The notes beneath the pieces were generated by a model, which saw only the letters and a list, made by a program, of their open reading frames with translations, searched no databases and was not told the origin of the DNA. The position numbers were made by a program, and so were the translations under genes. Shown here piece by piece: positions 1,633-64,000 of a stretch of DNA of 64,000 bases (the stretch's first letter is position 1; every line of letters starts with the position of its first letter). Origin of the DNA: Macrostomum lignano (lineage: Eukaryota); NCBI GenBank assembly GCA_002269645.1, contig NIVC01000989.1, positions 186,001 to 250,000 on the forward strand, in the 5' to 3' direction.

Positions 1633-1635
1633 TCC

Positions 1636-4985: not shown

Positions 4986-5120
4986 AGTGTCGACAAGCAG
5001 GTGTGGGGGACCCCAGTCGTAACATATTGCTGCATACCCTTTTAAGCATTGACATCTCAGGAGCTTATTTCAGACATCATGCATAACGATATCTTAAACA
5101 AATATTTCAGCTGCCAAGCC

Positions 5121-13075: not shown

Positions 13076-13135
13076 TTCAACGACATTCAACGAGTGACAT
13101 TTAGCGATTCCTTTGAACATTTTTGCAGCCTAAGA

Positions 13136-22100: not shown

Positions 22101-24129
22101 TCTGCATCCCTGTCTACTCTCTGTCTGCATCCCTGTCTACTCTCTGTCTGCATCTCTGTCTACTCTGTCTGCATCTCTGTCTACTCTGTCTGTATCTCTG
22201 TTTACTCTGTCTGCATCTTTGTCTACTCTCTGTTTGCATCTCTGTCTACTCTCTGTCTGCATCTCTGTCTACTCTCTGTCTGCATCTCTGTCTACTCTCT
22301 GTCTGCATCTCTGTCTACTCTCTGTCTGCATCTCTGTCTACTCTCTGTCTGCATCTCTGTCTACTCTCTGTCTGCATCCCTGTCTACTCTCTGTCTGCAT
22401 CTCTGTCTACTCTGTCTGCATCTCTGTCTACTCTGTCTGCATCTTTGTCTACTCTCTGTCTGCATCTCTGTCTGCATCTCTGTCTATTCTCTGTCTGCAT
22501 CTCTGTCTACTCTCTGTCTGCATCTCTGTCTACTCTGTCTGCATCTCTGTCTACTCTGTCTGTATCTCTGTTTACTCTGTCTGCATCCCTGTCTACTCTC
22601 TATCTGCATATGTCCATCCCATTTCCCTGCCTCTCTCTACTCCCTCAAAATCGCCCTCGCTCCACCCTGCCTACTTCTAAAGAGTTTTTTCTCTCAAATA
22701 ATGATGAAGTCTGGCAGCTCATATTTCTTTTTATAAGGTTTTCAAATCTTGCAATCGTAACTCTACTCGTGTGCATTGTAGTTCTCAGCAACTTCTCAAA
22801 AGTCTTGTGAATATCATTTTTTCTCTGCCAGTCAAAATCAATTTCTCTAAATCCTTTGCAACACGGCATGATAGGAAATTAGTCTTGGCTTGAGTTTAGC
22901 AGCTAAAATGGCTTCTTATCTGTCTGTCTGTCTGCAGTTGCTGCGTGTGCACCTTAAATGCGTAGCTTGGATTTGAAATAATAAAACGACATTATCTGAC
23001 CTGAGATATCAAATTTTCTTTCATCTCTCCGTCTGTCTCTCATGGCTAAATGTACTTCTCTCTGTCTACTTCTCTATTGCCTACTTTTCTCCTCTATGTC
23101 TACTTCTCTCCTTTATGTCTACTCCTCTCATTCATGTGTACTTTCTCTCCTTAATGTCTACTTCTCTCCTCTATGTCTACTTCTCTCCTTTATATCTACT
23201 TCTCTCCTCTGTCTACTCTTCTCCTCTCTGTCTACTTCTCTCCTTTATGTCTACTTTCTCTCCTTTATTTCTAATTTCTTTCCTCTCTGTCTACTTTTTT
23301 CTGTCTAATTTCTCTCCTCTCTGTCTACTTCTCTCCTCTGTCTAATTCTCTCCTACCTACTTTTCTTCTGTCTACTTGGCTTTTATCTGTCTACTTCTCC
23401 ACTATCTACTTATTTCTCCCTTCTGAACGAGAGACTATATCCATCTCCTATAATGCTCATTTTTCCACTATTCCCTCGTGCTCTCCAGGCGGCGGCCAGC
23501 GCTCCACGGTGATTCACTACATGAAGAACAACCGGCCGGTGCAGCCGCCCGACCTCATCCTTGCCGACTCCGGCGCTGATGTCCAAGGCTACGTTAGCGA
23601 CATCACTCGAACCTGGCCAGCCTCCCCGGACGGTTTCACGCCTCATCAGCTAGTTGCCTACGAGATTGTCCGTCAGCTACTGATTGACTGTCGGGATCAT
23701 TGTCGGATCGGAGTGTCGCTTGACGATGTCCACCTGTACATGGGCCAGAAACTGCGGGCTCGCCTCATTGAAGCCTCGATGCTCACGGAGGCCGGGGCCA
23801 GCCTGAGCTCTCACGCGCTGTGCCACGCCCTCTGTCCTCATCACGTGTCTCACTATCTCGGCATGGACGTCCACGATACGCCCAGCGTGTCCAGGTCCGA
23901 GCCTCTGCAGTGTGGCGTGGTGTTTCCCCTGGAGCCGGGGCTCTACCTGTCCCCTGACTGTCAGCTGGTGCATCAGGAGTTCCGCGGACTTGGCGGTGTT
24001 CGACTTGAAGACGATTTCGCTATTGGAGACACTGGCGAGCTGGAACTGCTGACTGGATCGGCTGCGCTGGACCCTGAGACTGTTCAGCGGCTGGCTGGTG
24101 ACGCTGAGACCTACTCTGCCAGCATCTGA
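13136..24129 (+). CDS. XPNPEP3: Xaa-Pro aminopeptidase 3 (mitochondrial Icp55-type, peptidase M24B), 525 aa
   Basis: Exons 13136-13350, 15071-15481, 18929-19239, 23489-24129, phases 2,2,1, total 1578 nt. Motifs RQNSYFRYLTG, LAYPPVIGGGQRSTVIHY, ADSG...YVSDITRTWP, HHVSHYLGMDVHD, LEPGLY and GVRLEDD (all metal ligands present). The Arg/Ser-rich N-terminus is presequence-like. Confidence 0.93.
13454..14335. repeat. 28-bp pyrimidine-rich minisatellite (CCCTCTCCCTGTCCCTATCTCTCTCTCA)n
   Basis: In XPNPEP3 intron 1. Confidence 0.95.
14626..14970 (+). mobile_element. tRNA-derived SINE, family A
   Basis: Reverse-complement homologue of 41-402. Head GGGAGGCCGAAGCCTAGCGGTCTAGCGC...GACTCGATTCC, tail TAATAAAAAA. 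Confidence 0.8.
15550..16220. repeat. AT-rich 23/46-bp minisatellite (TTAAGTCTGTTTTAATTAAGATTTGAGTCTTTGGTTTAGTTTAGAC)n
   Basis: Homogeneous 46-bp core at ~15697-15940 with degenerate flanks; XPNPEP3 intron 2. Confidence 0.9.
16870..17200. repeat. 21-bp purine-rich repeat (GAGTGAGATGCAGGGAGACAG)n
   Basis: Tandem units in XPNPEP3 intron 2. Confidence 0.9.
17810..18835. repeat. 23-bp minisatellite with two sub-domains (GGGGAGTAGAGATATAGGGAKAC, then GGGGAGTAGAGGTGCATTGAGAC)
   Basis: Abrupt unit switch at ~18365; XPNPEP3 intron 2. Confidence 0.95.
19290..20482. repeat. 22-23-bp minisatellite (GATAGATGTAGGGATACTCAAGT)n
   Basis: About 40 homogeneous units from ~19550, starting shortly after the donor at 19240. 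Confidence 0.97.
20858..22612. repeat. 23/25-bp minisatellite (CTCTGTCTGCATCTCTGTCTACT[CT])n
   Basis: XPNPEP3 intron 3. A short copy lies at 25225-25460. Confidence 0.97.
23050..23412. repeat. degenerate ~20-bp pyrimidine repeat (TCTACTTCTCTCCTCT...)
   Basis: Upstream of the XPNPEP3 exon 4 acceptor. Confidence 0.8.
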
Positions 24130-33153: not shown

Positions 33154-35860
33154 ATGGAGCCGCTCATGCAGCTGGTGGTTCCCGAGCTTGATGGCGGCGT
33201 CTTGAGACCGCTATTCGACACTATGCTCCAACAAGGTGTCAATGCAACTGACGACGTTGAATGCAGTGCCAAAGCAAGCACTGTTAGTCAGAACCGCAGC
33301 TTCTGCGAACAGAATGTAACCTACGTGGACCTTGGCAAACCCTTATTAGCCTGGTACCTTCAAAAGTTAAAGTCTCAGGTGCCGCTGTTCGTATCGGCTG
33401 GACTGATCTGGCTGATTCTCCTGGCAGCACTGATCGCAGTCTACTCGCGACTAGCCAGGACGACTAAAGTGCACGAAGCTCACAGATCTAACAGCCCTGT
33501 CGAGCGGAAACACCTGCGACCATTGTTTGTCTTCCTGACCTCCATAGTTCTGCTCATCGTCATCGGCGTTGTGCTGGCGGTGCTGCACTGGGCTGGACGA
33601 GCTCGATTCTCTGGAATGTCCGATCTGGGAGGCTGCAGAAACGGGACGAAGGACTGTGGCGACGACCAGCAGCAGAGGCAGCTGTGGAATCTCTCATCTG
33701 GCACTGGTCGCACGCACATGGTTGCCGCGTTCCGGCTGACAATTGACGAATTTGACGCTTTCGTTGAGCAGTCCATCGTAGAGACCAACGCCACGGTGCT
33801 AGCGCTAGCGGTGTGCAAAGAGGCCCTACCAGAAGTTCTTGCCGTACTGCAAACTGTTGCAACCGACCTGCTGGACAGGCTGGCCAGAGACTTCAAACTG
33901 ACGCCTCTGTTGACGTCCTTCGATGAGTTCATCAATCTGGTGAAGCTGCTGGTTGCCAGCATGCGGGCAATTATGGAGTCCCGCGACACCGTGGTTGAGC
34001 CACTCGTCCAGTTCTCTACGCTGGTTGACTCGGCCAGGCGAGATCTGCAGGAGCTCACAACCGATGCGTGCGCCTCGAACGCCTCTTCCGCGCCAACCTC
34101 AGCCGCGACCGCCGATCTGTGCCGAAGAATTTCTGCTCAACTCAACCTGCTGGACGTTGGCATTGATCAGCGACGCTTAAAGTCGGACAGCAGCGTGACA
34201 GTTGTCACATTGTTGGAGACGATGTTTAAGCTCAACTTTAGCCAAGTTGAAGACCAGGTGAAGAACGCCAAGGGTCAGCTGTACGGCAGTCTGGAGCTAG
34301 TTCGAGCCGAAGTGAGAAAACTCTTTGATAAATTAACTCTTGAAGTGTCGCAAAACTTCAACGCGGCCCTGACAGATGCTGAGTTATTTCGCGACGGAGT
34401 ACGCGGTGCCAAGAAGGACCGAGGATTCTTGGACGCCATGAAAACTGTGGACAGCCTTGTACACAGCTTCACAGTAGCGCTGGCCTTTGGCAGTGTTGCA
34501 TTTGTAATCATTAATGTCATTGCAATGTTCATCTCGATTCGCTACCTGCTTAGCTTTCGCGGTATCAGCAGCGACAGTACAGACGGAGGAACAGATGGAG
34601 AGCAAATCCCTCTGCAGTACATTGGGAATGGAAATTCTGCGCCAGTAGCCAATGGCAACGGACGTTGCATCGAGTTGCCGTTCCTTCAAAACAGCGATAT
34701 CGTCCGGGTTGACCAAAGACAGAAGGCCAAGGAGCCTCGCGACTGGCACCTGGTCTGCCTGTTTGCCAGCGGTTTGCTGGTTCTGGCGGCGCTGATCTAC
34801 GCGTCCGCGGTGTTCTACGCTGGCGCCGAGACCCAGATGGACGCGTGCCGCTACCTGACCACGGAGACAGGCATCAGCTACCTGGATCAGCGCGTCTACA
34901 GTGCAATGATTAACAGGTTATGGCCGCTAGTTGAAGCATTGATGCCAAATCATTTGATTGATTATTTGGGCTTCAGCAGCGATTTGATGCCGAGAGAATT
35001 GCTCAGCACCATCTTGAGCCGATGCGGGAACGACTCGGTGACAATTTTCCAAGCTCTCGGCCTGAGCAGTGCCGGGGCATTAGTCAACGCCAGCCAGTTG
35101 CTGCGTGCGCCATTCGTGACCAGGGAACTTAGCAAAGGCGGTGAAATGATACAGGTGAAGAGGTCTTGAAGAGTTTTCGTTTTCTACTTGTAGACGGAGT
35201 TCGCAGGGATTAGCTTTTTTCAACTAGAGGTGAACGCAGTTCCGCCATAAACAAATTCCCAAATGTCAGATAGATAAATCATTTCATGCAGAAGAAGGGG
35301 TGATGAGAGGCGAGTGAAGAGACGAGAGCGGAGAGAAGAGACGAGAGGGGAGATGAGTGAGGAGAGAAGAGACGAGAGGGGAGAGAGGAGGGAAGAGGGG
35401 AGAGAAGAGACGATAGGGGAGAAAAGAGACTATAAGAGAGAAGAGACGTGAGGGGGGGAAAGACAAGGGGAGAGAAGAGACGAGAGCGGAGAGAAGAGAC
35501 GAGAGGGGAGAGAAGAGACGAGAGCGGAGAGAAGAGACGAGAGGGGAGAGAAGAGACGAGAGCGGAGAGAAGAGACGAGAGGGGAGAGAAGAGACGAGAG
35601 GGGAGAGAAGAGACGAGAGCGGAGAGAAGAGACGAGAGGGGAGAGAAGAAACGAGAGGGGAGAGAAGAGACGAGAGCGGAGAGAAGAGACGAGAGGGGAG
35701 AGAAGAGACGAGAGCGGAGAGAAGAGACGAGAGGGGAGAGAAGAGACGAGAGCGGAGAGAAGAGACCAGGGGAAAGAAGAGACGAGAAGGGAGAAAAGAG
35801 ACGAGAGGAGGAGAAAAGAGACGAGAGGGGAGGAAAGAGACGAGAGCGGAGAGAAGAGAC

Positions 35861-35892
<32 letters not shown>

Positions 35893-36006
35893 CGAGAGGG
35901 GAGAGAAGAGACCAGGGGAAAGAAGAGACGAGAAGGGAGAAAAGAGACGAGAGGAGGAGAAAAGAGACGAGAGGGGAGGAAAGAGACGAGAGCGGAGAGA
36001 AGAGAC

Positions 36007-36038
<32 letters not shown>

Positions 36039-37088
36039 CCAGGGGAAAGAAGAGACGAGAAGGGAGAAAAGAGACGAGAGGAGGAGAAAAGAGACGAGAG
36101 GGGAGGAAAGAGACGAGAGCGGAGAGAAGAGACGAGAGGGGAGAGAAGAGAGCGGAGAGAAGAGACGAGAGGGGAGAGAAGAGACCAGGGGAAAGAAGAG
36201 ACGAGAAGGGAGAAAAGAGACGAGAGGAGGAGAAAAGAGACGAGAGGGGAGGAAAGAGACGAAAGGAGACACTAAAGGAGAAAAGTGTAAGAAAGTGCGT
36301 AAGACTACAAGGAGGACGTGAGCAACTGACACTCATGTGACACGCTTGCAAAACACTCGAAAATTTCGCAGGACCTGGTCCGCGATCTGGACACAAACAA
36401 TCTCATTCCCGCCGAGGTGGACGATCTCCTGAAGAATACCCTGCCAAATTTCGCTTCGGCAATTGACTCGGAGAATTTCGCTTCGAGCATTCTGGAATTG
36501 AACAAACCGTTGCTGTTACTGTCCGCAGCGGACTTTCGCAGCCTTCGGCGGCACCTGAGCCGGCTTGAGGACAATCTGAGGCGAGCAAATTCTACCGATC
36601 GAAGACCCGACCTGATCAACTACATGGCGCACAAAACTGAGAGAAATATCGACAGATGGAACCGGACACTCATAGCGGGACTAAAATTTCTATTAGGAAA
36701 TTTTACAACTCTGCAAACGAATCGAAGATTAACAAATTTGACGTTTAGTCTGACGGTTGATGCGTTGAATCTTAAAAAAACTTTAGCGAACAAATATTTC
36801 TTGCTAAGGTCGATTGCTAGACGCTACAATGAGACTCTGTTTGAGCACATGTCGATGATTGCCGAGCTTGGGAACAGCCTCATCAGTCGGCTGCTCAATC
36901 GGGTTGGACGGTGCGGTCCGCTGCGCGACATCTTTCAGATTTCCGTCAAATGGTGCCAGGTGCAAATTGAGCCACTGCCAGAAACTGGGATCTACTTGAT
37001 GGCGTCTTGTATTGCATTTTACATTATGGTGCATCTCATGCTGTGCCTCATGTATCGCATGAGAACGAAAACTGAGGTGTACTCTTAA
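33154..37088 (+). CDS. prominin-like five-transmembrane glycoprotein, 905 aa
   Basis: Exons 33154-35154 and 36372-37088, phase 0. Five TM segments in prominin topology (TM1, TM2, large loop, TM3, TM4, large loop, TM5), with ETQMDACRYL after TM4, RCGNDSVTIFQALGL and a CGPL motif before TM5. Confidence 0.7.
35300..36262. repeat. 19-bp GA-rich minisatellite (GAGAAGAGACGAGAGGGGA / GCGGA variant) with higher-order units
   Basis: Fills the prominin-like intron. Confidence 0.95.
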
Positions 37089-38278: not shown

Positions 38279-41200
38279 TCAAATGTAGGCGGTTACCAAC
38301 AATTCAAAGCCATTGATTGTTTGGTCTCCGTTAGGTGAGACCAAGTGATGCAGCTGGCACAGCAGTTCGCGCAGCTTCGCAGTTGTCAACCCAGCAGCGT
38401 ACTCAATGACTGGCCAATCGGCTGATACCTGCTGCTTAACGTCAATTGCTACCAGAGCTCTCATGCTGAGTCGTCTCTGTGCTAGAACTCTTTGACGAAT
38501 GTCCGACAGAATGTCTGACAGCACTGGCAGCTGGTCACGGCGAGACTGGATAATTTCGAGTTGTCGGATTACTTTTAATCATTCATAACTCGTGATCTGG
38601 GAAAAGCCAGCAGTTTCTGCACACTAAGTAGTTACGTACGCAGTCACACAAGCTCACACAGGATGTAAAACGGCCCTGACTTTCTCACCGAGAGATAATT
38701 GTACACAGTTCTTACCATGCGAAAAATGTTGACTGCCTGACTAAAGTAGACACTGTACTCCACAACCAAATAGCTTTGAGTGAACATTGCCAGCTGCAAG
38801 GTGACTTGGCGTTCACGAGTTCTCAACTCAACAGATGCATTGATTACACCGGCCGATGGCGAGCTTGACGCGGATGCTGTGGGGGGAGATCCGGTTAAGA
38901 ATGTTAAGTTAAGTTAAGAATCTCCGCCGCCCCTCCCCATCTACCGAGTGCACCTGTTAAACCAAACCCATCTGGACGTCTCACCCGGCCAAAGCTCCGG
39001 CGTGGCAGAGTAGAACAGCTCCATGAACTGCACAAACTGCAACTCATCCTTGATATCTCGAGCAGCCAGGGTCTCGGCGCTGTCACCAGCAGCATTTCGC
39101 TTGTCGGGACTGGCGCCAGCGCTCAGCAAGAATTGAACCAGTCCAAGGTGGCCTCCAGTGGTGGCTCTGGTCAGCCAAGTCTCGCCATCTGCCGGGTCGA
39201 TGGCGTCAATATCGACACCAAGCCGATCAGTGAGCAGGTTCAATAGTTTCACGTTGAACTGGGGAACTGCCATTGACAGCAGGCGTCTGGGAAGACCTTC
39301 AATAAATTCATCGGAACAGAAATCGAAGCTGAACACTATCAGAGCTTCCAGGATTCTTCTGTGACCAGCCTCGACAGCAAATTCAAGAAGCTGCTGGTGC
39401 TGCTGTTCGCGATGATGTCGCTGACGATGCCAGTCCTCTCGACGCTGGTAGCATAGTCTGTCAAGTCAGCCGGGTCGGTAATAAAAAAGGTGATGTTTTT
39501 TACATGACAATCTTTACTAGCTCATCTAGACTTTTTGCGACGCAATTATCACTATGGAGCCTTAAAGTCGTATCTGAGGCGTGCAAGAGTCGCTTTAGAA
39601 GCCTTGAGGCACACTCAGTGCTTCTGCGCATCTGCACATCTTCTGCGCATCTGCACATCTTCGTCACTTAATGAATTAGAATCGCATTTCACATTTATAT
39701 CAACTCTATTATTTAGTCAACTTGACTTAGTAGAAAGTTATGCGTTAGCACAGCGACAGCGAATTTTTTGCGACTGGCAATTCTTTACAACTCACGTGAT
39801 GCGCTCGTGACTCAACAGTCACCTCTCCGTCGCATTTCAGTCGTTTTAGCTGTTAAAAAGTCACAGGAGTCACCCCAGAGTCAATAGAGTTACTGGTGAG
39901 TTGTTTGCAATGACTATTTAGCGATTCTTAGCACGGTAACGTTTTCAACGGGGTTGGGCCGCCTCGAAAGGGTCAAATTCAGCTGCGTACTAACTCCAAT
40001 CGACTAGTCTCTGTTGTTATCGAATACTGTTGAAATTCTGTCTCTTTGACTTTGAGTTTCAGAGAAGAACATCGGTAATGATACTGCATGGTCGGTAATC
40101 GGTAATGTATAAATATGATATTCTGCTGGTTACTTCTCAGGATTTTGGAAAAAAACTTACTTTGAAATTTCAATACATCCGTTTCATACATCGAAGTAGC
40201 AACTCGATGGTGCGCAGGACACACACGGCTACTGCTTCACTCACCTAGCCAGAACTTCAGCCTCCCATCCGCGTTGCACAGCGAGTCCCAGCAGACTGAC
40301 GCCGGAGTCTCCCAGGCTCGGCAGCGGCAGAATTTGTTGAGCTTTGCATCCGCGATGACCCGCCAAGCAGCGCAGCACGTTTAGGCAGCTTCTTTCGGCG
40401 AGCAACTGCGACGGCGTTCGGCCAGTCTTGTCCGTCCTGTCCAACGGGCCGCCGCGTCTGGCGATGAGCTGCAAAACTGCGCAGGCTGTGGCCTCGTCCG
40501 GGCAGTGGGCGCAGCACAGGTGAGCCAAGGTCAAGTCTGAGTGGCTTTTAACCGAGGCTGAGCACTTTCCTTCGATCAGTAGGTAACGTAGAGCCGACAG
40601 TTTCCCTAGCGCGGCGGCCCAGAAAGTTGGAGTGAAGCCATGACGGTCGCGATGATCCAGGGTGGCGCCAGCAGCCTTCAGATAGCGCAGAATCGCCTCT
40701 GTGGCGTCGGGATTTTCGCAGAGGATGGCAGCGACGGGCAGAGTTAGCGACAGCAAGCCGTCTTTGGCGCCGCAGAGTCCGCTTGGAATTGAGGCTGTTG
40801 GGAGCTGCTCAACAAGGGTTAACGAGATTAGTGACTGTCTTTAATATTATAGAAACAAAGAGGACAATGAAAATTCATTTGTCTCGAGAGGGTTCATGCG
40901 TAACTCTTGGGCAAGCAAGTGTAGCCATGCTCAAAAGTACAAAAATATTCCTTACGTTGATCTCTCCGGGGTGACAGTCGAATACGAAGTTCAAATTAAT
41001 TCCGCAATTTTTAACCGCTGCATCGAGCAGGTCAATGCGACCCAGAGCTGTCTTATTGATCAGGCAGTGCTGTATAACATAGTCGCTGGCGGTCTTGTAA
41101 ATAATAGGCGGTGGCTTCTTGTTCATTGCGCCCAGTGACCCGGCTACCACCTCTTGTAAGTCGATGGAAGCAAGTATCCAAACTGATTGAACAGCTTTGC

Positions 41201-42104
41201 AGACTTCCTGTTAAGTTTTAGAGGACTCTTCTTGTCGTTTAAACAAAGGGAATATCGAACGAACGAACGAACGAACGAACGAACGAACGAACGAACGAAC
41301 GAACGAACGAACGAACGAACGAACGAACGAACAAACAAACGAACGAACGAACGAACAAACGAACGAACGAACGAACGAACGAACGAACGAACGAACGAAC
41401 GAACGAACGAACGAACAAACAAACGAACGAACGAACAAACGAACGAACGAACGAACGAACGAACGAACGAACGAACGAATGAATGAATGAACGAATGAAT
41501 GAACGAACGAACGAACACACAAACAAAAGAATGGACAAATAAAAAAGAATGAAAAGCAGTCAAAACAGAACCAGAGAACGAATATATGTAAAACGTGCAC
41601 CCAACTACCGGTACTATCTACCTTTGCAGCACCGTAGGCTAGCACAATCTTCATGATCTCGTTAGCATCACGAACAGCTCGACTCGCTACAGCTCCGTAC
41701 AACGCGTAATGAATCAACGATACACCTTCGAAATCAGTGAATTCGTTCTCGTCAGTCAGCAGAGTGGGATCCGCTAGCAGCAGTTCGCGTACAATCTCGG
41801 GAGATCCGTGAGACACCGCTCGCATCAGCGCGGACTTGCCGCGATTGTCTCGCATAGCCGGATTGGCCCCGTGTTCGAGCAGAAGCTTGGTGCAAGCCAG
41901 GTGATTATAGCCACAGGTAATGTGAAGCGGTGTCTTACCATTTCTAGCCCTAAACTTGATGTTGGGATCCACCATGCCAGCCTGTAGAATCATTCTGACA
42001 GCGCTTGTGTTGTTCTCTTCAAGAGCTGATACGAATGTCGCCATCAGTTCGGCGGCCGCGCGATCTCGGGGCGACCCGAATAGCCAGCCTCGAAAAAGAT
42101 CCAT
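38279..42104 (-). CDS. multi-exon ankyrin-repeat protein (~731 aa)
   Basis: Exons 42104-41622, 41207-40956, 40804-40245, 39457-38985, 38876-38716 and 38545 (or 38596)-38279, phases 0,0,2,1,0. Ankyrin motifs GKTPLHITCG, GKSALMRAV, GFTPTFWAA, GRTPSQL, GETWLTRA...GHLGLVQFLLSAGA. Confidence 0.78.
41258..41520. repeat. (GAAC)n microsatellite
   Basis: About 65 units in ankyrin gene intron 1. Confidence 0.98.
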
Positions 42105-47149: not shown

Positions 47150-48060
47150 TTTTTTCTAGCCTGCTGCTGCTAAAAGTGGCCAACAAATAGACAGCAAGGT
47201 GTCAATTTTTCATGGCAATCAATGACCTTACTAACACAATACTTCCTCAAAGCCCACTGTTGAAGATCATTAAAAAGGGCCACAATGTGGTTGAAGACTG
47301 CTCTTGATTGCCAGTGTAAAATAGGCATGCTGCCTTATTTAGCAGTAGCTAGCATTCCCGCATGTTAATCTTTGGGAGCATCCAGCACAGCTTTGCTCTC
47401 AGAGCCAAGGTCAAGTTCCTTTGTCCACCCTGCTGCTCCTGGGAGCCCATTATTGAATAAAAGGTCTCAATGATAGCTTCTGAAATAAATGAAAGTGAGG
47501 GTTTAATTCTATGATCATGGCTAATCCTGGTTATAGCATGCATTTGTAAATGCAAGAACAAAGTTGGTACATAAAAAACTCCTACCTGTGCCACCACAGT
47601 GAAGGATGAAGTCTAGTAAACAACAGGCTGCTCGACCTGCAACTTTGAAAAGGTGGGGATTCCTGTATATTGATTGATAGACTGCTGCCTCATTCAGCCA
47701 CACATTGTGTCTGTAGCTAGATTCCATGGTGACAAGTAGATGCAAGTTCAATAAGTCAAGTTGTGAGGTTGATTCAGCAACTTTAGAAATGTGTCTAGCA
47801 ACAGGAGGCTCAAGCCAACACTCATGGCCAATACCTGACAAGAAGGCCTTGTGAATCAATGATATATAATCAGCCAAATATTTTCAATGCAGCTTGGCTG
47901 TTAGTTGCTTATTCTTGTGATGCTCAGCCTGCTAGACAAAGCGCTTTATAGCAGTTGAGTTGAGGTTGTAAATTTCTCTGTATTGACATCTAGGTCAGTT
48001 GAGGTCAGCAATAGAATGACTGCAGCAGCATCATTTAGCATTAGCATCAGCAGTTGCCTA
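47150..48060 (-). pseudogene. fossil intron-containing transposase-like gene
   Basis: One frame persists from ~48060 to 47586 with scattered TGA/TAG stops. A 106-bp GT-AG intron (47585-47480) joins the two listed ORFs into LDFILHCGGT-EAIIETFYSIMGSQEQQGGQRNLTLALRAKLCW. A later TAG and a frameshift precede KYCVSKVID. Confidence 0.55.
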
Positions 48061-50880: not shown

Positions 50881-52928
50881 TCTATACATTCATAATACCC
50901 AGCCAATTCAGCCTGGTTATGAAAGGTCTAGCTAAGGTAATTTGCAAAAATGCACATCTGAAAAAGACAGTATACTAATTAGATGACGAGATATTTATTC
51001 TTAATAATATAGTCAGTTACTTCTGTTGTTTATCCAAAATGTATTACTAAGTCTATTTTTCAGGTAGGCATTTTTGCAACTTGCCAAATCAGCCAGCTTG
51101 GCTAGGTGTTGCACATGTGTATATTGGCTAAATTATGCAATTTTAATCTAACAATAAGAGAATTAAATGTCATGACTACAAACAATTTTCAAGTAGCCTT
51201 TTTGCTAAAAAAATTAGCATATTTTTGCCCCTCACTGAGAATATTAGAATATACAGATAAATGAAGGTCAAATCCTAATTTAAATGCCTTTAGGTATATA
51301 TATATATTATGTATAATGGAAGTACCAATTGTATATAATATTTAATATATATTATCTGACCCTATTGATGCACATGGCATAAGTGTGCTAGAAGCCTACC
51401 CTAACTGCTCCATGCTTGCAGACAATGCTGCAATGCTCCAAGTGGTCCTCTGTGCTACACTATGCCTTTCTACCATGTTGTACCTCTCAGTCTCTACACT
51501 ATGCCATGTCATACCCAGGCAGGCCAGACTGAAACATGTTGGATGCCATCCACCAAAATGCCTATGCAATATGTATTGCAATCAAGTCATCCAAAAGCTA
51601 AAACTGAATTGCTTTTTTATTTTTCAGGTTTCTTTATATAAAACCAGTGACTACAAATCATAGCTTTAATAATAATTTTGACTAACTGATTGTATGTAAT
51701 TAAATTATAATTAAAACTCAATAACATTCAACTATATCTTTGTGGTTTAGTCTAGTTGAATGCTCATTTAGCTTTGATACAAAGTTGTCTCGCATCATTT
51801 TAACATCAATGTATCCATATACATACTTTTTTGTCTTTCAATATTAATATTGTTGATTTTTGGTCTTTTTATTTTCACTTCTCATTGCTTGTTCATTGAT
51901 TTATGAAATATTTATATACATTGTTATTGAATTAACAGTTTTTTTCATTTAAATACAAAGTGAAGTCTTTTACAGACAACCTATATTTTTTACATGACAG
52001 ATTTTTCAGCATTCTAAACAGTCTTTCATTAGATTTTGTCTTATAATTCTTCATTTGTTTGATGGATACAATTATCAGAATGAAAACTTTGTATATTTAC
52101 CTGCAATATTTCGCCGTACAGAACTGATTTCTTTATTGTCTGTACTGGTAGTAAGTGCAGGAATATTGTTAACTGTGTTGGTTGTTAGTTTACTCACTTC
52201 GATTTGTGAATGTTTTGCTTCAATGCAGGTCCACAGTTCACAAATCTATAGAACGCAGTGACATTTTTATTAAAACAGACTATTCCTTCCTTTTCAAGTT
52301 TTCTCTATAAAAATCATTTGTCTTACTGTTAGTAGGACATTGGAAACTGGTAATAGGTTGTGCTAAATTTAAGATACTTACAAAGTAGCATAACTATTTG
52401 ATAAGAGACCACGAAATTATTATCGATAATAATAGCGAGGCTTGAAAGTTATAATTATTTTTACAACAATAAGAAAATACATTTTACAGTACAGTATACT
52501 GGCTGAAAACAGCACTTACTTTATTGCATTTACACATTTAATTAGTAGCCCTAGCCGATATGTATCGAAATTAACTTTACATGGCTGTATTTTTAACGGA
52601 AATTCGCAAAATTGAAATAGATTATTATTTTTTTTGTCCACTAGATATGATTGCGGAGAGATTAAAACTAGTCCAAATTGTCTTTCATTAGATCAGTTGA
52701 TTCAAAGGCGTAGAAGCAACAACAATTTTTGCGTATAAATTACAAATAATCTTGTTTGCAACTGCAATACGTTTATATAAGCGAACTACAACTATCAGTT
52801 TGCTGGCTTCAACGATAAGCAGAAGTAAAAGAACTACCGGTTTTTTCAACATTCACTACATCCAAAGCAAGTTAGTTCAACTGTGTCTTTGTAAACGTTG
52901 GGTAATTTTTTGAATTACAAAAAAATTA

Positions 52929-53010
52929 CGTCGCAAGCAGGATTCGAACCTGCGCGGGGAAACCCCATTGGATTTCGAGTCCAACGCCTTAACCACTCGG
53001 CCATCGCGAC
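52929..53010 (-). tRNA. trnS-CGA: tRNA-Ser(CGA)
   Basis: 82 nt. Acceptor stem GTCGCGA/TTGCGAC+G, D-arm TGGCCGAGTGGTTAAGG, anticodon arm TTGGA-CTCGAAA-TCCAA, long variable arm, GGTTCGAATCC, followed by a T-run Pol III terminator. Confidence 0.97.
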
Positions 53011-53121
53011 ATACCTGTTTTGGCAGATTTATGTAAATTTAATACCCATATGGCGTTATTGATCTTGCTCACAAGCGATTGACAATACCTAAATGTAGTC
53101 GATGTATGTCAACCCAGGTTG

Positions 53122-56100
53122 TTACTTGCATCGCTTCTCAATAATAAAAGTCTCTTTAACATTTTTAGCAATATTTGCCGTGTTGCACTTCGGACAACAA
53201 GGCGATAGTTCCTCTTCCCAGCGCGTCCAACAATGTCTATGGTACACGTGGCCGCACGAAGTTCTCATTGTTGAGCAGACAACCGCGTTGTAACTACGCG
53301 TGGACTCGTGATCGGGCGGGGCGTGCAATGCGCAGAAGCACATTAGGCAGCTGTGCGTCAGAGGCAGGTCGCACAGGTAGCAGTCGCGGCTCCAGTCTGA
53401 ACGGAACACTCTGCGTAGGCACCTGAGAAAAGTGGAATAGAGCTAATCAGATTGCTGGGCATTACATTGGAGACGGTGGTATTTAACTAAGGGCGCCAAG
53501 GCTTGCTGTAAGTAGCCATATTACCATGGAGGATGTCAGCACTCAGTGACATATCTCTGAGGGATGTAAGCACTCAGTGACATATCTCTGAAGGATGTCA
53601 GCACTCAATGACATCTCTGGAGGATGTCAGCACTCAGTAACAAAACTCTGGATGTCAGCACCCAGTGACATATCTCTGAAGGATGTCAGCACTCAGTGAC
53701 ATATCTCTGAAGGATGTCAGCACTCAGTGACAAAACTGGAGGATGTCAGCACTCAAGTGACATATCTCTAAAGGATGTCAGCACTCAACTCTGGAGGATG
53801 TCAGCACTCATTGACATATCTCTGAAGGATGTCAGCACTCAGTGACATATCTCTGAGGGATGTAAGCACTCAGTGACACCACTCTAAAGATGTCAACAAC
53901 ACACAGTGGCACATGCCACTACACTATGAATTATTTTAGTGTTCAATGTCACACAACTCTGAATTAAGATGTCTGTCAGCTTCCACAGTAAGACACAACC
54001 GGCTATGAAGGATGTTAACACATGCACTCAGTGACACAACTCACCATCGACAGAGGGCGCTCAGCATGCCGCTGTGCTGCATATCGTGATAATTAGCCAG
54101 ATCTCGACAGTCCAATGCCAGGTGGCTGATGTCCGACCCGGCAGAACTGCCAACCACTGGTTTCCTTGGCGTCATCGTCCCTATGGAAGACTTGGACGTG
54201 TGACGCGAGTAGGGCTGCGGTTGATTGTATAGAAGCAGCTGGTGACTGTGCGGTTGCAGGCGATCCGAAATGCTATCAACCATCGATCCGGTTGGATAGT
54301 ACTGCAGCTGTCCGTCCAAGAAGGTGCTTGGCAAATTCAAGATCAGGATCGGTTTGTCCGCCGAGCACAGACTGCGACTGCCGCTCGGCGCTGCAGGGTC
54401 TTCCCATGAGCGGCTCTGCTTCTGACTCTCTGTAAAATGTGCATTTTCAGTACGAAACAGATACAATAATTACCACTGGGGGGCTGGGACATCTCCCCCC
54501 ACCAGTAAAAGCTATGGGGGGACATGCCAATGCTTCGTCCCTATCCACCCCACCTTGAGACCCGTTGTGGTAAAAATAATTTTACTTTAGGGCGACAAAA
54601 TATAGCGCCTTCGGCGCCAAAATGAGTGTCTGCGGCGTCAAAATGAGTGCCTGCAGCGCCAATTTAAATGAGTGCCTGCGGCGCCAAAATGAGTACTTGC
54701 GGCGCCAAAATGAGTACCTTCGGCGTCAAAATGAGTGCCTGTGGCGCCAAAATGAGTGCCTGCGGCGCCAAAATGAATTCCGGTGGCGCTAAAAAGACTG
54801 CCTGCGGCGCCAATTTAAATCAGTGCCTGCGGCGCCAAAATGAGCGCTGACAACACGATTCTCAAAGTGATGGAAATGTAGGAATTTAGTCATGTACATC
54901 TTGAATTGTTAGCTTTGTCTCCCCATCATAAAATCCATGGCGACGCCCCTCCTGCCTTGGGGGGGGGGGGCTTGGATCTCACGGGTGTGAAACGCACGAC
55001 AAACCTCAGGACTCAGAAGAAAAAAATGAACTCTGCAGGGCAGCCAAGAAAGCCTCACACTAACCGGACAGGTCCAGAGCTTCCCAGGCACCTTCATCAG
55101 AGGCAGTCTTTTGTTCGCTGCCAGATTCTGCAGCAGTGGTTACGGCGGCGGTGGCACCCTCGGATCCGACGCGCACCAGCAGAACGCTATCCGAGCCTTC
55201 GTTATCTGCAGAGTGCCGCAACGACTGCGCGTCGTCTCTGTTTTCGTCAGGTTCAAGTGTCTTGATGGTCGAAGTGGTGTCACCCGTGAGATGAGATACA
55301 CTCGGGGTGTCCCATTCTTTGTACTGGCTGCCGTCGTCAATGTTGCTGCAGTTGGCCTGACCGCTGGCGACGTTGGAGTTCCAACAGTTGGCCAGCGAAG
55401 ATTTCTTTGCCAAGGCTGCAAATCGCTGTCTTAGAAATCTTTCGGCTGATTGTTTCGATGAAGACGTAGGCGTTGATTCGCACCGTCTGCAAGATGTCTC
55501 GCATGTCAGGCGGTACTGCTTTGAATAGGAAGATTTAGCTAGTTTGGCAGTTACGTTCGTTGAATCTGAAGCTTGTACGTTCGTTGAATCCGAAGCTTGT
55601 GCGTTCGTTGAATCCGAAGCTTGTACGTTGGTTGAATCCGAAGCTTGTGCGTTCGTTGAATCCGAAGCTTGTACGTTCGTTGAATCCGAAGCTTGTGCGT
55701 TCGTTGAATCCGAAGCTTGTGCGTTCGTTGAATCCGAAGCTTGTACGTTGGTTGAATCCGAAGCTTGTGCGTTCGTTGAATCCGAAGCTTGTACGTTCGT
55801 TGAATCCGAAGCTTGTGCGTTCGTTGAATCCGAAGCTTGTACGTTCGTTGAATCCGAAGCTTGTGCGTTCGTTGAATCCGAAGCTTGTACGTTGGTTGAA
55901 TCCGAAGCTTGTGCGTTCGTTGAATCCGAAGCTTGTACGTTCGTTGAATCCGAAGCTTGTACGTTCGTTGAATCCGAAGCTTGTACGTTCGTTGAATCCG
56001 AAGCTTGTACGTTCGTTGAATCCGAAGCTTGTACGTTCGTTGAATCCGAAGCTTGTACGTTCGTTGAATCCGAAGCTTGTACGTTCGTTGAATCCGAAGC

Positions 56101-56712
56101 TTGTACGTTCGTTGAATTCAAGGCGTGTACTATTGCTAAATCCGAAGCTTGTACTTTAGTCAAACCCGAAACATGTACTTTTGTCGAATCCAGTGCATGC
56201 ACTTTTGTTGAATCCAGCCGTTGTAATTCTGTCGAATCCGGTACTTGATTTGACCTCTCTACTTCTTGGCATTTGACGGCTGAGCCATCTCGTTGTATCG
56301 TTGAAGCAGCCGATGCTTGCTCAACCTCTGATGTGTCAGAATCTTCCGCATTCGCCTCGTCAGCTTCTGCAGCTTCTAGAACTCCTTGAAGCCACGGGCT
56401 CGGCGATTTCAACCAGCTTCCAGTGTAGGATTCGCTAAAAATAGTTAATTTTAAAGTTCGCTACCGTTAAGTTGTAACAAGACTAATTGGCCTTATAAAA
56501 ATCTACAATATAAAATTGTTACCAATTTTCAATCGAATCTTCCCAACGTGAGGCTGAAGAAACATCTGATCCGGCTATCTGAGCGATTTCGGCACCGATG
56601 TGAATGAAACAATTTGAACTGGCAGTTTTGTTAATCAGTTGATCGAGAAGTTGAGCTCTGCTAGAATCCATATTGGCGTCGTTATGCAGCTGCATGTAGG
56701 CAAGAAAATTCA
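53122..56712 (-). CDS. low-complexity/repeat protein with C-terminal RBX1/APC11-type RING-H2 (5' end unresolved, >=748 aa)
   Basis: Exons 56712-56523, 56434-55065, 54429-54045, 53422-53122, GT-AG, phases 2,1,2 all consistent. The last exon encodes CYLC-x7-CLMC...C-x6-CGHVYHRHCWTRW...CPKC. Confidence 0.7.
53530..53880. repeat. 31-bp repeat (GGATGTCAGCACTCAGTGACATATCTCTGAA)n
   Basis: About 11 units in the last intron of the RING gene. Confidence 0.92.
54472..54951 (+). mobile_element. copy of the hAT-like element (left end truncated or degenerate)
   Basis: Shares GCTATGGGGGGACATGCCAATGCTT, TATAGCGCCTTCGGCGCCAAAATGAGTG repeats and the right end ATAAAATCCATGGCGACGCCCC with 31371-32264. It lies in an intron of the RING gene. 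Confidence 0.85.
55555..56120 (-). repeat. coding 24-bp tandem repeat, (QASDSTN[V/A]) x ~23
   Basis: Lies in frame within exon 56434-55065 and is preceded by degenerate octapeptides. Confidence 0.9.
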
Positions 56713-56949: not shown

Positions 56950-57140
56950 GATAGAGATGGAGAGAGAGAGATAGGGAGGAAACTATGAAAAGAGTGAGAT
57001 AGACAGGGTGAGAGGTAGAGAGAGATGGAGAGTGAGAGATGGAGAGGGAGAGACGGAGAAAGAGAGACGGAGAGTGAGAGACGGAGGGTGAGAGACGGAG
57101 AGGGAGAGACGGAGAGGGAGAGACGGAAACCGAGACGGAG
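56950..57140. repeat. GA-rich low-complexity repeat
   Basis: GAGAGACGGAGAG-type units. Confidence 0.8.
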
Positions 57141-57579
57141 AGATGCAAAGGTAGAGTCAGAGACCAAGAAGCTGTGCACGGGGGCAGCACAGAGTAGTAA
57201 GAGAAAACAAAAAATCCTGCTGATGTTTCTAAGAAATGATGCTGAAGAGTTTGAAGTGGCCTCCCATGCGCGGATCGCAATCAGGGAGAACTCGCGCAGA
57301 ATTCCGGCCTAATGCCTCCTCTAATTGGCAATTAGTTCGAGCGACAACTCGGCCCCTAGCATGCTCAAGCAGTTTTTTCCATACAGCCTGGAAAGGAATC
57401 TGAAAAGAGCTCGACTTTGCCCCCCCCCCCTGGAAACCGAATGCAGCTGACCTGAATTGTGCGGCTGACCGTCACTCCGTCTGCTTAGAAAATCTCTGGA
57501 TTAAATGGGTCAGTCAGGCGACGGCTTCTGGTAGATGGGGCAGAAATTTGTTCAGGAATTTGCATATTCGGTCCGTATT

Positions 57580-58095
57580 GGATTGCTAATCTATGCAATG
57601 GATTGCTAATCTATGCAATGGATTGCTAATCTATGCAATGGATTGCTAATCTATGCAATGGATTGCTAATCTATGTAATGGATTGCTAATCTATGTAATG
57701 GATTGCTAATCTATGCAATGGATTGCTAATCTATGCAATGGATTGCTAATCTATGCAATGGATTGCTAATCTATGCAATGGATTGCTAATCTATGCAATG
57801 GATTGCTAATCTATGCAATGGATTGCTAATCTATGTAATGGATTGCTAATCTATGTAATGGATTGCTAATCTATGTAATGGATTGCTAATCTATAGAACG
57901 GATTGCTAATCTATAGAATGGATTGCTAATCTATAGAATGGATTGCTAATCCATGTAATGGATTGCTAATCTATAGAACGGATTGCTAATCTATAGAATG
58001 GATTGCTAATCTATAGAATGGATTGCTAATCTATAGAATGGATTGCTAATCTATAGAATGGATTGCTAATCTATACAATGGATTGCTAATCTGTA
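57580..58095. repeat. 20-bp minisatellite (GGATTGCTAATCTATGCAAT)n
   Basis: About 25 units with polarised variants (GCAAT, GTAAT, AGAAT). Confidence 0.97.
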
Positions 58096-58659
58096 GGAAC
58101 CTTTTACAAAAGCAAGCATTTTTGAAGCAAGAAGTTGCGACCTTCTTAGCATCATGTGTGAAATTTCTCCAGCTTAATCTTAGTGCAAGGTGCAAGCTCC
58201 TAATCCACCAAAAGGTTTGTATATTTGTGATTAGCAGTTACCCGCCTGTTCAGCGGACCATGGATGGGTTAGCAGCGAAGTTATGAAAACTGCCAGCAAA
58301 ATAGTCAATGTTGGAAGCAAAGAAATTCCGCGCGATTGAAGTGAAGAAATGGCTTACATTTTTTGTGTTTATACCATAGGCGGTTGGCTGTATACGGTTT
58401 GGGAGGAAATAAACACACACACACACTTGCCCCCAATTTTGTTATACCCTCTGTATCTGGAGGGATCTTCGTAACAAGGAGTAAATATCTCGATGAGAGA
58501 TGTAAGTGCGTGTCTAGGTGTGCTTTTTGGGGGTTGGCGCACTGTGACTGACTGATTTGGATTTTACGAGTTAAACAATATCAGCTGATTGGGGGGTGAC
58601 GAGTAGAGTGAGTGACAGAATTGGGGGAGACAGCGATTGATTTATGAGGCAGGGAATAG

Positions 58660-59150
58660 CGGGAGACCAGAGAGAGTGAAGGGAGAGAGTGATGGGGGAG
58701 AGTGATGGGAGAGAGTGAAGGAGAGAGTGAAGGGAGAGAGTGATGGGAGAGAGTGAAGGGAGAGAGTGATGGGAGAGAGTGAAGGGAGAGAGTGAAGGGA
58801 GAGAGTGAAGGGAGAGAGTGAAGGGAGAGAGTGAAGGGAGAGAGTGATGGGAGAGAGTGATGGGTGAGAGTGAAGGGAGAGAGTGAAGGGAGAGAGTGAT
58901 GGGAGAGAGTGACGGGAGAGAGTGAAGGGAGAGAGTGATGGGAGAGAGTGATGGGAGAGAGTGATGGGAGAGAGTGACGGGAGAGAGTGATGGGAGAGAG
59001 TGACGGGAGAGAGTGATGGGAGAGAGCGAAGGGAGAGGGAGAGAGTGACGGGAGAGAGTAAGAGGTGAGAATGAAGTGTGAGAATGGAGGGTGAGAATGA
59101 AGGGAGAGAGTCATGGGAGAGGGTGAAGGGAGAGGGTGAGAGTGACGGGA
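58660..59150. repeat. 13-bp repeat (GAGAGAGTGAWGG)n
   Basis: Visible tandem units. Confidence 0.92.
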
Positions 59151-59169
59151 GAGAGACCAGAAATTAACC

Positions 59170-60090
59170 AGAGCTGACCTAAGAGTGATCACAGAGTGAC
59201 CAGTGAGAGTAACCAGAGTGACCAGAGAGTAACCAGAGAGTGGCCAGAGAGTGACCAGAGAGTGACCGGAGGTGACCAGAAAGTGACAAGAGAGTAACCA
59301 GAGAGTGACCAGAGAGTAACCAGAGAGTGACCAGAGAGTGACCAGAGAGTGACCAGAGAGTGACCAGAGAGTGACCAGAGAGTAACCAGAGAGTAACCAG
59401 AGAGTAACCAGAGAGTGACCAGAGAGTAACCAGAGAGTGACCAGAGAGTGACCAGAGAGTAACCAGAGAGTGACTAGAGAGTAACCAGAGAGTGACCAGA
59501 GAGTAACCAGAGAGTGACCAGAGAGAGACCAGAGAGTGACCAGAGAGTGACCAGAGAGTGACCAGAGAGTGACCAGAGAGAGTGACCAGAGAGTGACCAG
59601 AGAGAGACCAGAGAGTAACCAGAGAGTGACCAGAGAGAGTGACCAGAGAGTGACCAGAGAGAGACCAGAGAGTAACCAGAGAGTGACCAGAGAGAGTGAC
59701 CAGAGAGTGACCAGAGAGTGGCCAGAGAGTGACCAGAGAGAGACCAGAGAGTAACCAGAGAGTGACCAGAGAGAGTGACCAGAGAGTGACCAGAGAGAGA
59801 CCAGAGAGTAACCAGAGAGTGACCAGAGAGAGTGACCAGAGAGTGACCAGAGAGTGGCCAGAGAGTGACCAGAGAGAGACCAGAGAGTAACCAGAGAGTG
59901 ACCAGAGAGAGTGACCAGAGAGTGACCAGAGAGTGACCAGAGAGAGACCAGAGAGTAACCAGAGAGTGACCAGAGAGAGTGACCAGAGAGTGACCAGAGA
60001 GTGACCAGAGAGTGACCAGAGAGTGACCAGAGAGTGACCAGAAAGTGACCAGAGAGTGACCAGAGAGAGTGACCTGGGACAGTGACCAGA
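59170..60090. repeat. 11-bp minisatellite (GTGACCAGAGA)n
   Basis: About 80 units with higher-order variants. Confidence 0.95.
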
Positions 60091-60427
60091 GAAGCGAGGC
60101 AAGTCAGAATTTGAGCTCATTCCTCACGATAAAGAGTACAGCTAATGGAAGTTATGAATCACCTTCAGCAGCAAGTGATGCCGGAGCTCAATATCTGAAT
60201 TCCCATTGGGGGATTACAGCTATCGCTACACTGAGAACCCATTAATCCATCTCTTTTTTCTTGCCCTTTTTTTGCGCCAACCTTGCCAAGTGGCTTATAG
60301 CGATAAAAATAAACCATAGCTATAACGCGATTTTCTTGCGTATTTTTATTTAGCTAAACTTCTCAAATCTGCCTTAATAATTGTAAGCGAAGGTCACAGT
60401 TCCCTGTCGCTGAACGAAACACATTTT

Positions 60428-61443: not shown

Positions 61444-61654
61444 TTTGCTGCATTTTTTGCTGCTGTTGTTGTTACTTTTCTGGCAATGTCAGGATTTGAA
61501 AAGAACTGGTCTGAAACCCCCAAGAAGTGGCTTTCAAGGGGATTTTGACGTGGGCGGCGTAGGTCATGCAGGCAGAGGTTTCTGCAGGAACCAATTTTAA
61601 GCAATTGTAACTTTCAGAGAGAAAGTTGAAGCTCAGAATACGGAAAATCACACA

Positions 61655-63050
61655 TATTTAATGCATTCACACAGATTCTTAATGCATTCACACAGATTCT
61701 TAATGCATTCACACAGATTCTTAATGCATTCACACAGATTATTAATGCATTCACACAGATTCTTAATGCATTCACACATATTCTTAATGCATTCACACAG
61801 ATTCTTAATGCATTCACACAGATTCTTAATGCATTCACACAGATTCTTAATGCATTCACACAGATTCTTAATGCATTCACACAGATTCTTAATGCATTCA
61901 CACAGATTCTTAATGCATTCCCACAGATTCTTAATGCATTCACACAGATTCGTAATGCATTCACACAGATTCCTAATCTTAGAATTCACACAGATTCTTA
62001 ATGCATTCAAACATATTCTTAATGCATTCACACAGATTCTTAATGCATTCACACAGATTCTTAATGCATTCACACAGATTCTTAATGCATTCACACAGAT
62101 TCTTAATGCATTCACACAGATTCCTAATCTTAGAATTCACACAGATTCCTAATGTTAAAATTCACACAGATTCCTAATCTTAGAATTCACACAGATTCCT
62201 AATATTAAAATTCACACAGATTCCTAATCTTAGAATTCACACAGATTCTTAATGCATTTACACAGATTCTTAATGCATTTACACAGATTCTTAATGCATT
62301 CACACAGATTCTTAATGCATTCACACAGATTCTTAATGTATTCACACAGATTCGTAATGCATTCACACAGATTCGTAATGCATTCACACAGATTCGTAAT
62401 CTTAGAATTCACACAGATTCTTAATGCATTTACACAGATTCTTAATGCATTTACACAGATTCTTAATGCATTCACACAGATTCTTAATGCATTCACACAG
62501 ATTCTTAATGTATTCACACAGATTCGTAATGCATTCACACAGATTCGTAATGCATTCACACAGATTCGTAATCTTAGAATTCACACAGATTCTTAATGCA
62601 TTCACACAGATTCCTAATCTAAGCATTCACACAGATTCCTAATCTTCACATTCACACAGATTCCTAATCTTCACAGTCACACAGATTCCTAATCTAAGCA
62701 CTCACACAGATTCCTAATCTTCACAGTCACACAGATTCCTAATCTTACCATTCACACACAGATTCCTAATCTTAGCATTCACACAGATTCCTAATTTTAG
62801 CATTCACACAGATTCATAATCTTAGCATTCACACAGATTCCTAATCTTCACAGTCACACAGATTCCTATTCTTAGCATTCACACAGATTCCGAATTTTAC
62901 ATTCACAAAGATTCCTATTCTTAGCATTCACACAGATTCCTAATCTTCACATTCACAAAGATTCCTATTCTTAGCATTCACACAGATTCCAAATTTTACA
63001 TTCACAAAGATTCTTAATCTAAGCATTCACACAGATTCCGAATCTTCATG
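61655..63050. repeat. 21-bp minisatellite (AATGCATTCACACAGATTCTT)n
   Basis: About 65 units, with a ~170-bp higher-order duplication at 62220-62590. Confidence 0.97.
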
Positions 63051-63402: not shown

Positions 63403-63975
63403 ATGTCTAATAAATCAACTATCACATTGTTATTAACTATCCATCTAGCAGCTGTCAGTTCAATCAGTTTCAATATCGAACTAGACGAAGACAACGGCGA
63501 ATTGACAAGTTCGAGGTCGAGAATATTTGCTCGACTGTCTGATTACGTCACCGGGCCGATCCTGGACACGATGCGCTTCGAGACCGATCAGCACTCGTCG
63601 AAGGTGGCCAAGTACTTCAACGTGGACTCGAGAACTGGCGAAATGTCCACGCTGGGCAATGGCAGCCTGGATTTGGACCGGCTGTGCCAGCAGGTGGAAG
63701 TCTGCTGCCAGCGTCAACAGGTGTGCAGCGTCCGGGTTCGAGTCCGCCTGATTGACAGCGCCAATGTCGACGGCACCCAATCAGTGTGGGCCAACATCAG
63801 GCTGAGAGACTTGAACGACAACGGGCCCCAGTTTCTGCATTCCAGCTACAATTTGACCATTGAAGAGGGCGGGCAGCCTGGCGAGAATATTCGGCTGCCT
63901 CAGGCGGCGGATTTAGACTCGGAGGAGTTCGGCGTGAGGGAGTACACCTTGCTGGAGCCGAGCGCCTACTTCCAG
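63403..63975 (+). CDS. protocadherin-like cadherin, first coding exon (continues beyond window)
   Basis: Signal peptide, EC1 with FNVDSRTGEM and LDLDRLC...CC...C, linker DLNDNGPQF, EC2 AADLDSEEFG. Donor CAG|GTGTGG at 63976. Confidence 0.85.
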
Positions 63976-64000
63976 GTGTGGCTTTTTTAGATAGAAGATG

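Follow-up and report, generated by a model that had tools for sequence, protein, structure and literature searches.

An RBX1-like zinc-ligand pattern in the C-terminal RING-H2 domain of a long repeat protein of Macrostomum lignano

Introduction

A largely disordered region followed by a C-terminal RING-H2 domain, as in RLIM, Praja, and Arkadia, is a common layout of ubiquitin ligases (E3s). The RING domains of RBX1/ROC1, RBX2/RNF7, and APC11 have a 12-ligand pattern in common (C-x2-C-x7-C-x2-C ... C-x6-C-x-H-x2-H-x-H-C ... C-x2-C/D), and a RING of this type has generally been described only in the small catalytic subunits of cullin-RING ligases and of the anaphase-promoting complex/cyclosome (APC/C). 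RBX1 itself binds three zinc ions (PMC3366790), and among all the RINGs of Drosophila the C6H3C2D type with three zinc ions occurs only in Roc1a, Roc1b, Roc2, and lmg, all of ~100 aa (PMC3166285). Here we describe a gene with such a pattern in a 64,000-nucleotide stretch of the genome of the free-living flatworm Macrostomum lignano (assembly GCA_002269645.1, Mlig_3_7; contig NIVC01000989.1, positions 186,001 to 250,000 of the forward strand), which we refer to as the window and number from its first letter. The gene lies on the minus strand in four GT-AG exons, and its spliced coding sequence is exactly that of GenBank entry PAA73877.1 (742 aa; BOX15_Mlig024114g1).

The locus is a real transcribed gene that is already in GenBank and UniProt and is uncharacterized, being labeled "hypothetical protein" in GenBank and "RING-type domain-containing protein" in UniRef/UniProt. 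No Pfam family is attached to the database record of PAA73877.1, and the RBX1-like ligand pattern of the protein is unrecorded to date. Neither Mlig024114 nor Mlig024339 was found in the literature and supplements searched, which included the searchable gene lists for germline, neoblasts, and reproduction. On balance, the gene seems to encode a RING-H2 E3 ligase that is restricted to its lineage and works autonomously, and that combines a disordered arm with a third zinc site like that of RBX1.

Results

The RING-H2 domain of the RBX1 type spans residues 657 to 722 (53185..53382, minus strand) and was delimited by pattern matching with shuffles, BLASTP, hhalign, and a fold search. It reads CYLC-x7-CLMC-x20-C-x6-C-G-H-VY-H-R-H-C-x11-C-PK-C, with C657, C660, C668, C671, C692, C699, H701, H704, H706, C707, C719, and C722 at the ligand positions. 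The pattern C-x2-C-x7-C-x2-C-x20-C-x6-C-x-H-x2-H-x-H-C-x11-C-x2-C had a single match when the window was translated in all six frames and arose in none of 2,000,000 composition-preserving shuffles of the RING exon, whereas a generic RING-H2 pattern arose in 416. Family spacing was defined as C-x2-C-x7-C-x2-C-xn-C-x6-C-x-H-x2-H-x-[HC]-C-x10-13-C-x2-[CD]; residues 657 to 722 also satisfied the generic RING-H2 expression C-x2-C-x(9-39)-C-x-H-x2-H-x2-C-x(4-48)-C-x2-C. The last spacing is x11 (x10 in RBX1), and the final ligand is not Asp but Cys, which is also found there in APC11 and RBX2. All 12 ligands aligned to those of RBX1, and the claim of a sequence-only reading of the window, that the exon keeps the RBX1 ligand pattern together with the third-site positions, was thereby upheld.

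C668, C671, C692, and H706 aligned exactly to C53, C56, C68, and H82 of RBX1, the ligands of the third zinc site in RBX1 structures. It is mainly because of this exact match that we consider a genuine RBX1-like three-zinc fold likely for this RING. In the hhalign alignment, L659, W711, and P720 corresponded to I44, W87, and P95 of RBX1, its contact residues for the ubiquitin-conjugating enzyme (E2), and these positions are thus kept; N723, directly after the last ligand, lies at the position of the RBX1 linchpin N98.

An exhaustive HMMER scan with the C-terminal 391 residues against 1.84 billion representative proteins gave five matches at E ≤ 1e-3, namely, the protein itself, three matches to half of the RING, and P0005, a protein of 119 aa that was the sole whole-RING match besides the protein itself (E = 8.9e-4). 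P0005 is orthologous to RBX1 (E = 1.6e-17 against the human protein, N-terminal strand included), and BLASTP aligned 12 of 12 ligands between it and the M. lignano protein. Against a profile of RBX1, RBX2, APC11, and P0005 (the first three human, with the RBX1 sequence in agreement with the PDB alignment), hhalign aligned 61 columns from around the first Cys with 93% probability (E = 3.4e-7). An in silico mutant of the four third-site ligands aligned just 29 C-terminal columns, and the two-zinc RING of Hrd1 aligned 26 C-terminal columns, yet with the same probability of 93%; the hhalign probability was therefore rejected as evidence of RBX1 type, and what remains informative is how far the alignment reaches. 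In an AlphaFold2 (AF2) model built from a 3-sequence alignment, the RING core had predicted local distance difference test scores (pLDDT) of 71 to 82, and in a fold search with this model the 22 best PDB matches were all RBX2, RBX1, or APC11, ahead of Hrd1. The best PDB match by sequence was the Hrd1 RING 6f98 (E = 4.8e-4), and RBX1 was not among the phmmer matches against the PDB at E ≤ 10. None of the searches (Pfam, PDB, and 1.84 billion proteins) returned a better match to a known multidomain RING family.

A word-indexed homologue search, which needs shared 5-mers and so is no survey of long, divergent proteins that carry such a RING, gave no match at E ≤ 0.01 for the C-terminal 391 aa; a two-sequence alignment of the RING recovered only P0005 and P0008, both small and RBX1-like. 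The latter, a 119-aa protein from a JGI (Joint Genome Institute) metagenome, is an RBX1 homologue with an intact N-terminal strand in which the three Cys of the third site are replaced (…CSICRNSLNEPSIEYQ…GLSIAFGNCGHVYH…), and some lineages can therefore do without this zinc site.

Several results weigh against our reading of this RING and of the gene. The Pfam scores were under the gathering cutoffs for zf-rbx1 (PF12678; 22.5 versus 31), zf-RING_2 (10.5 versus 27.3), and zf-ANAPC11 (PF12861; 7.3 versus 25), so that the HMMER check suggested in the sequence-only reading came out below the cutoff for both of the families it named; the controls, human RBX1 and P0005, scored 89.3 and 57.8 bits with zf-rbx1 and 50.4 and 37.9 bits with zf-ANAPC11. 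The zf-RING_2 model penalizes the 38-residue first loop. Nor is zf-rbx1 diagnostic, since the two-zinc Hrd1 RING scored 36.6 and the third-site mutant of the protein itself still scored 20.2; the model does not tell three-zinc from two-zinc RINGs, and after these controls its score was rejected as evidence for the RBX1 type. A single-sequence AF2 model had a pLDDT of 40 and was unusable, the support from the 3-sequence AF2 model is weak and partly circular because the alignment contained two RBX1 homologues, and the Foldseek E values were only ~3e-3, with a high root mean square deviation. No orthologue was found with which to assess selective constraint, and a second genomic copy (see below) is identical over the gene and thus uninformative on this point.

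The zinc topology itself could also be a different one, in which C657, C660, C668, and C671 form a separate C4 knuckle and C673-x2-H676 is the first RING pair. A RING-like zinc module of this or another kind that does not transfer ubiquitin, whether a decoy that binds E2 or a partner, a dimerization module, or a two-zinc RING after the separate knuckle, appears improbable to us. Such a module would be in keeping with scores below threshold against every Pfam RING model, with a CxxC-x7-CxxC segment that could bind zinc alone, and with the availability of C673-x2-H676 as an alternative first pair. However, C692 and H706 lie exactly at C68 and H82 of RBX1, a coincidence that would be unexplained if they were not ligands, and L659, W711, P720, and the Asn at the linchpin position are all retained.

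Stable cullin binding is said, after work by Zheng et al. in 2002, to depend on the N-terminal strand of RBX1. The hhalign alignment began at profile column 23 (D-N-C), one residue before the first Cys, and did not cover this strand; a hidden Markov model of the RBX1-family N-terminal strand only had no match over the whole 742 aa (−1.9 bits); and in the AF2 model from the 3-sequence alignment the 25 residues preceding the RING had a pLDDT of <50. Because the anchoring strand is undetectable, the protein probably does not dock on a cullin, and we found no evidence, in these results or in the subthreshold zf-rbx1 score, for the "cullin-RING-like E3" proposed from the sequence-only reading. A paralogue of RBX1 or APC11 that still docks on a cullin or an APC2-like scaffold, and hence a cullin-RING ligase whose RING subunit bears its own substrate or tether arm, is highly improbable in our judgment, even though the 12-ligand pattern and its spacings are otherwise characteristic of RBX1, RNF7, and APC11 and the type is confined in the Drosophila set to four ~100-aa cullin and APC subunits (PMC3166285). 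Upstream of the RING, the spacing of W639...D648 coincides with that of W27...D36 in RBX1, but this coincidence came from a forced global MAFFT alignment and is not significant. Since the size (742 aa versus the ~85 to 120 aa expected of the family), the Pfam scores, and the N-terminal strand all depart from what is expected of RBX1 and APC11, we did not file the protein as a member of that family; membership is not supported, and the protein is not an RBX1 or APC11 orthologue.

All three exon junctions predicted from the sequence (56523/56434, 55065/54429, and 54045/53422) are GT-AG, in phase, and of good consensus, and they are the same as those of the PAA73877.1 model derived from a genome-guided RNA sequencing (RNA-seq) transcriptome. 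The linkage of the exons rests on transcript data because the Mlig_3_7 annotation is RNA-seq derived, having been built with StringTie/TACO, mapped de novo transcripts, spliced-leader and poly(A) reads, and TransDecoder (PMC5730564). The start differs from that of the sequence-only reading: coding exon 1 (56523..56695, minus strand, as are all exons of the gene) begins with the ATG at 56695-56693, and the ATG that had been proposed, at 56671, is the second in frame and lies eight codons farther downstream. An in-frame stop lies upstream at 56719-56717, and the N terminus of the PAA73877.1 protein reads MQLHNDANMDSS. Coding exon 2 (55065..56434; 1,370 nt) is acidic and rich in Ser, Thr, Asn, and Gln and holds an octapeptide array, inside a 450-aa open reading frame (ORF) at 55060-56412. 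Coding exon 3 (54045..54429; 385 nt, 128 aa) has no detectable homology and ends at the donor TCGATG/gtgagt. Coding exon 4, the RING exon (53122..53422), follows the acceptor cttttctcag/G and ends with the stop codon TAA at 53124-53122; upstream of the acceptor its frame runs open for just 7 codons, and the first Cys is not preceded by any ATG, as had been noted from the sequence. That this exon is the last one holds for PAA73877.1 but not for the alternative model described below. Outside the repeats, ~510 codons remain open over the four phased exons. A candidate polyadenylation signal, ATTAAA (53038..53043, minus strand), recognized by its sequence only, lies ~80 nt past the stop and just upstream of a tRNA gene.

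The region upstream of the RING is, as had been claimed, long, mostly of low complexity, acidic, and Ser/Thr-rich: residues 1 to 643 contain 19% Ser, 12% Ala, 9% Asp, 8% Thr, and 8% Gln and have a net charge of −43. No homologue or domain was found for them in Pfam, the PDB, or the databases searched, and PDB sequence searches returned noise only. On charge and hydropathy, residues 58 to 514 were on the disordered side and exons 1 and 3 were borderline ordered; most of residues 1 to 643 is probably disordered. Hydropathy revealed no hydrophobic segment for a membrane anchor or signal peptide, the top 21-residue window (1.21) being inside the RING itself, and a membrane-anchored, Hrd1-like ligase was rejected for this lack of a hydrophobic segment.

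The octapeptide array is an in-frame 24-bp coding minisatellite (55552..56239, minus strand; 24 bp × 26.7 copies with 92% matches in Tandem Repeats Finder, plus 2.8 degenerate copies). It comprises five degenerate units at the 5' end followed by 22 perfect units of DSTN[VA]QAS, with ~28 units in register, so that the repeats reported from the sequence-only reading are there but are more numerous than the ~23 it had counted. The core is built of only three DNA unit variants, and 22 perfect units from so few variants indicate that the array was expanded or homogenized recently. Tandem repeats make up 15% of the M. lignano genome (PMC5730564), and an in-frame coding minisatellite is unsurprising in a genome and a window this rich in repeats. 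The gene has further minisatellites in intron 3 (53530-53878, 31 bp × 11.7 copies) and intron 2 (54591-54844, 21 bp × 11.7 copies).

No relatives of the gene were detectable outside M. lignano, and for the C-terminal 391 residues the matches among the 1.84 billion proteins were to the RING only. We therefore weighed whether this is a young orphan gene that evolves fast and whose conserved function is slight or absent, in which a RING exon, perhaps an RBX1-like duplicate, was joined to a transcribed minisatellite region and the resulting ORF is tolerated. The lack of relatives, also in the word-indexed search, would fit such an origin, as would the repeat content of the genome, the minisatellites of the window that are often open in several frames, the repeat number that differs between database models, and the absence of the gene from the searchable supplementary lists of germline, neoblast, and reproduction genes. 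It is nevertheless an unlikely explanation, although one to be taken seriously: none of the 12 zinc ligands or of the E2-contact residues is lost, the nonrepeat codons are open throughout the four phased exons, the degenerate 5' units point to an array of at least some age, and the transcript was assembled in two independent annotations.

The second database model, UniProt A0A1I8HR70 (P0001), is an alternative of 702 aa. It begins with LHNDANMDSS directly after the AG acceptor ttttcttgcctacatgcag/CTG at 56690/56689, uses the donor 56548/GT with the acceptor 56385/56384 and thereby drops 25 aa, and has two repeat units fewer than PAA73877.1. At its 3' end, the donor AA/GTAACA at 53126/53125 leads from the RING exon to an alternative terminal mini-exon starting at 47479 (47468..47479, minus strand; acceptor CATTTATTTCAG), which reads A AGC TAT CAT TGA and adds SYH and a stop after the Lys. 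With this mini-exon, the window DNA reproduces A0A1I8HR70 exactly, bar two repeat units. The mini-exon may reflect read-through toward the downstream minus-strand ankyrin-repeat ORFs at 42104-40241. The spliced leader of M. lignano ends in ...GCATG (PMC8629364), and because its ATG would be in frame with the start of A0A1I8HR70 at LHNDANMDSS, the acceptor at 56690/56689 may be a site of spliced-leader trans-splicing, or else a cis acceptor. Exact-sequence look-ups of the A0A1I8HR70 protein and of one neighboring ORF gave no match.

A second genomic copy of the gene was found on NIVC01003089.1 (6194-13833, corresponding to 58096-50439 of the window). From 56817 to 51153 the two copies had zero substitutions, introns and intronic repeats included, and differed by three 1-bp homopolymer indels, whereas the flanks diverged by 0.5 to 7%. 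The indel at 56562, in exon 1, accounts for the shortened annotation of the second copy (PAA53425.1; 179 aa) and resembles an error of long-read sequencing. The second copy could be a redundant part of the assembly, or it could have arisen by gene conversion or by duplication very recently.

Around the gene, a tRNA-Ser(CGA) gene (52928-53011, minus strand) lies ~110 nt downstream of the stop of the RING gene, just after the ATTAAA at 53043-53038, and falls inside the 5.6-kb terminal intron in the A0A1I8HR70 model. Exons of neighboring genes at 2541-3107 (+), 18798-24129 (+), 40241-42104 (−), and 63403-63990 (+) encode products that include a DEAD-box helicase fragment, an M24 (Xaa-Pro type) metallopeptidase, ankyrin-repeat proteins, and a large cadherin; the cadherin gene is divergent from the RING gene and starts ~6.7 kb upstream across repeat DNA. 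Long tandem arrays occupy 1100-8300, 13000-14450, 17700-18750, 20700-22800, 35280-36400, 57020-60120, and 61650-62150, with examples such as a 784-aa "FEGDSLMA" ORF at 5948-8302, a 20-bp array of 25.7 copies at 57579-58092, and 11- to 13-bp arrays at 58670-60000. Because these arrays are open in several frames, an ORF-based reading of the M. lignano genome needs care.

Discussion

In the reading that we favor, the RING would fold as a three-zinc cross-brace and would bind a ubiquitin-charged E2 via L659, W711, P720, and N723 at the linchpin position. In this way the protein would work as an E3 on its own and in a single chain, and its N-terminal arm might supply substrate or partner binding, or else regulation by phosphorylation. 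If the three-zinc RING is real and has no cullin anchor, then the third zinc site would be a portable feature of RING-H2 domains, or RINGs derived from RBX1 could be recruited into autonomous E3s. A bolder version of the same idea, which we hold to be very unlikely, is that a three-zinc RING derived from RBX1 was freed from the cullin scaffold, or docks via a diverged anchor near CRW/CLRRVFRSD, and was fused to a fast-evolving multivalent repeat arm. If true, a single chain would amount to an RBX1 that brings its own arm for substrates, and an RBX1-type RING could work outside the cullin-RING and APC/C complexes. The practical weight of the finding is limited, as no homologue of the gene could be detected outside M. 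lignano and it was already deposited as an uncharacterized RING protein. The gene also illustrates how the abundant minisatellites of M. lignano turn into long in-frame coding repeats.

The best fold matches of the RING are RBX1, RBX2, and APC11, and its best whole-RING sequence match is an RBX1 orthologue. The E2-contact Ile or Leu, Trp, and Pro and the Asn after the last ligand are common to these proteins and the M. lignano protein. Identity to this RING is only ~28 to 30%, however, and the loop of the predicted third site has 20 residues, versus 11 in RBX1 and 6 in APC11. The three known proteins are of ~85 to 120 aa and have a strand that inserts into a cullin or APC2, whereas the M. lignano protein has 742 aa and no detectable strand of this kind. 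Hrd1/synoviolin and gp78/AMFR likewise have RING-H2 domains in which a long loop separates the first ligand pair from C-x-H, but Hrd1 is without the four extra ligands and aligns to the RBX1 profile over 26 columns, compared with 61 for the protein described here. Hrd1 is, moreover, a multipass membrane protein, whereas the M. lignano protein has no apparent transmembrane segment.

In architecture, and probably in mode of action, the protein is most like RLIM/RNF12, RNF6, Praja1/2, Arkadia/RNF111, and RNF38, in which a disordered, charged or Ser-rich arm is combined with a C-terminal RING-H2. RLIM, as well as AMFR, was among the best PDB sequence matches for the C-terminal half of the RING. 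Because this layout was already common, the architecture is a variation on a known kind and not categorically new, and the novelty suggested from the sequence alone does not stand. RINGs of the RLIM, Praja, and Arkadia type coordinate two zinc ions, their first loops are short, and they show no similarity to the M. lignano protein outside the RING; the feature that would distinguish the latter from these E3s is the predicted RBX1-like third zinc site.

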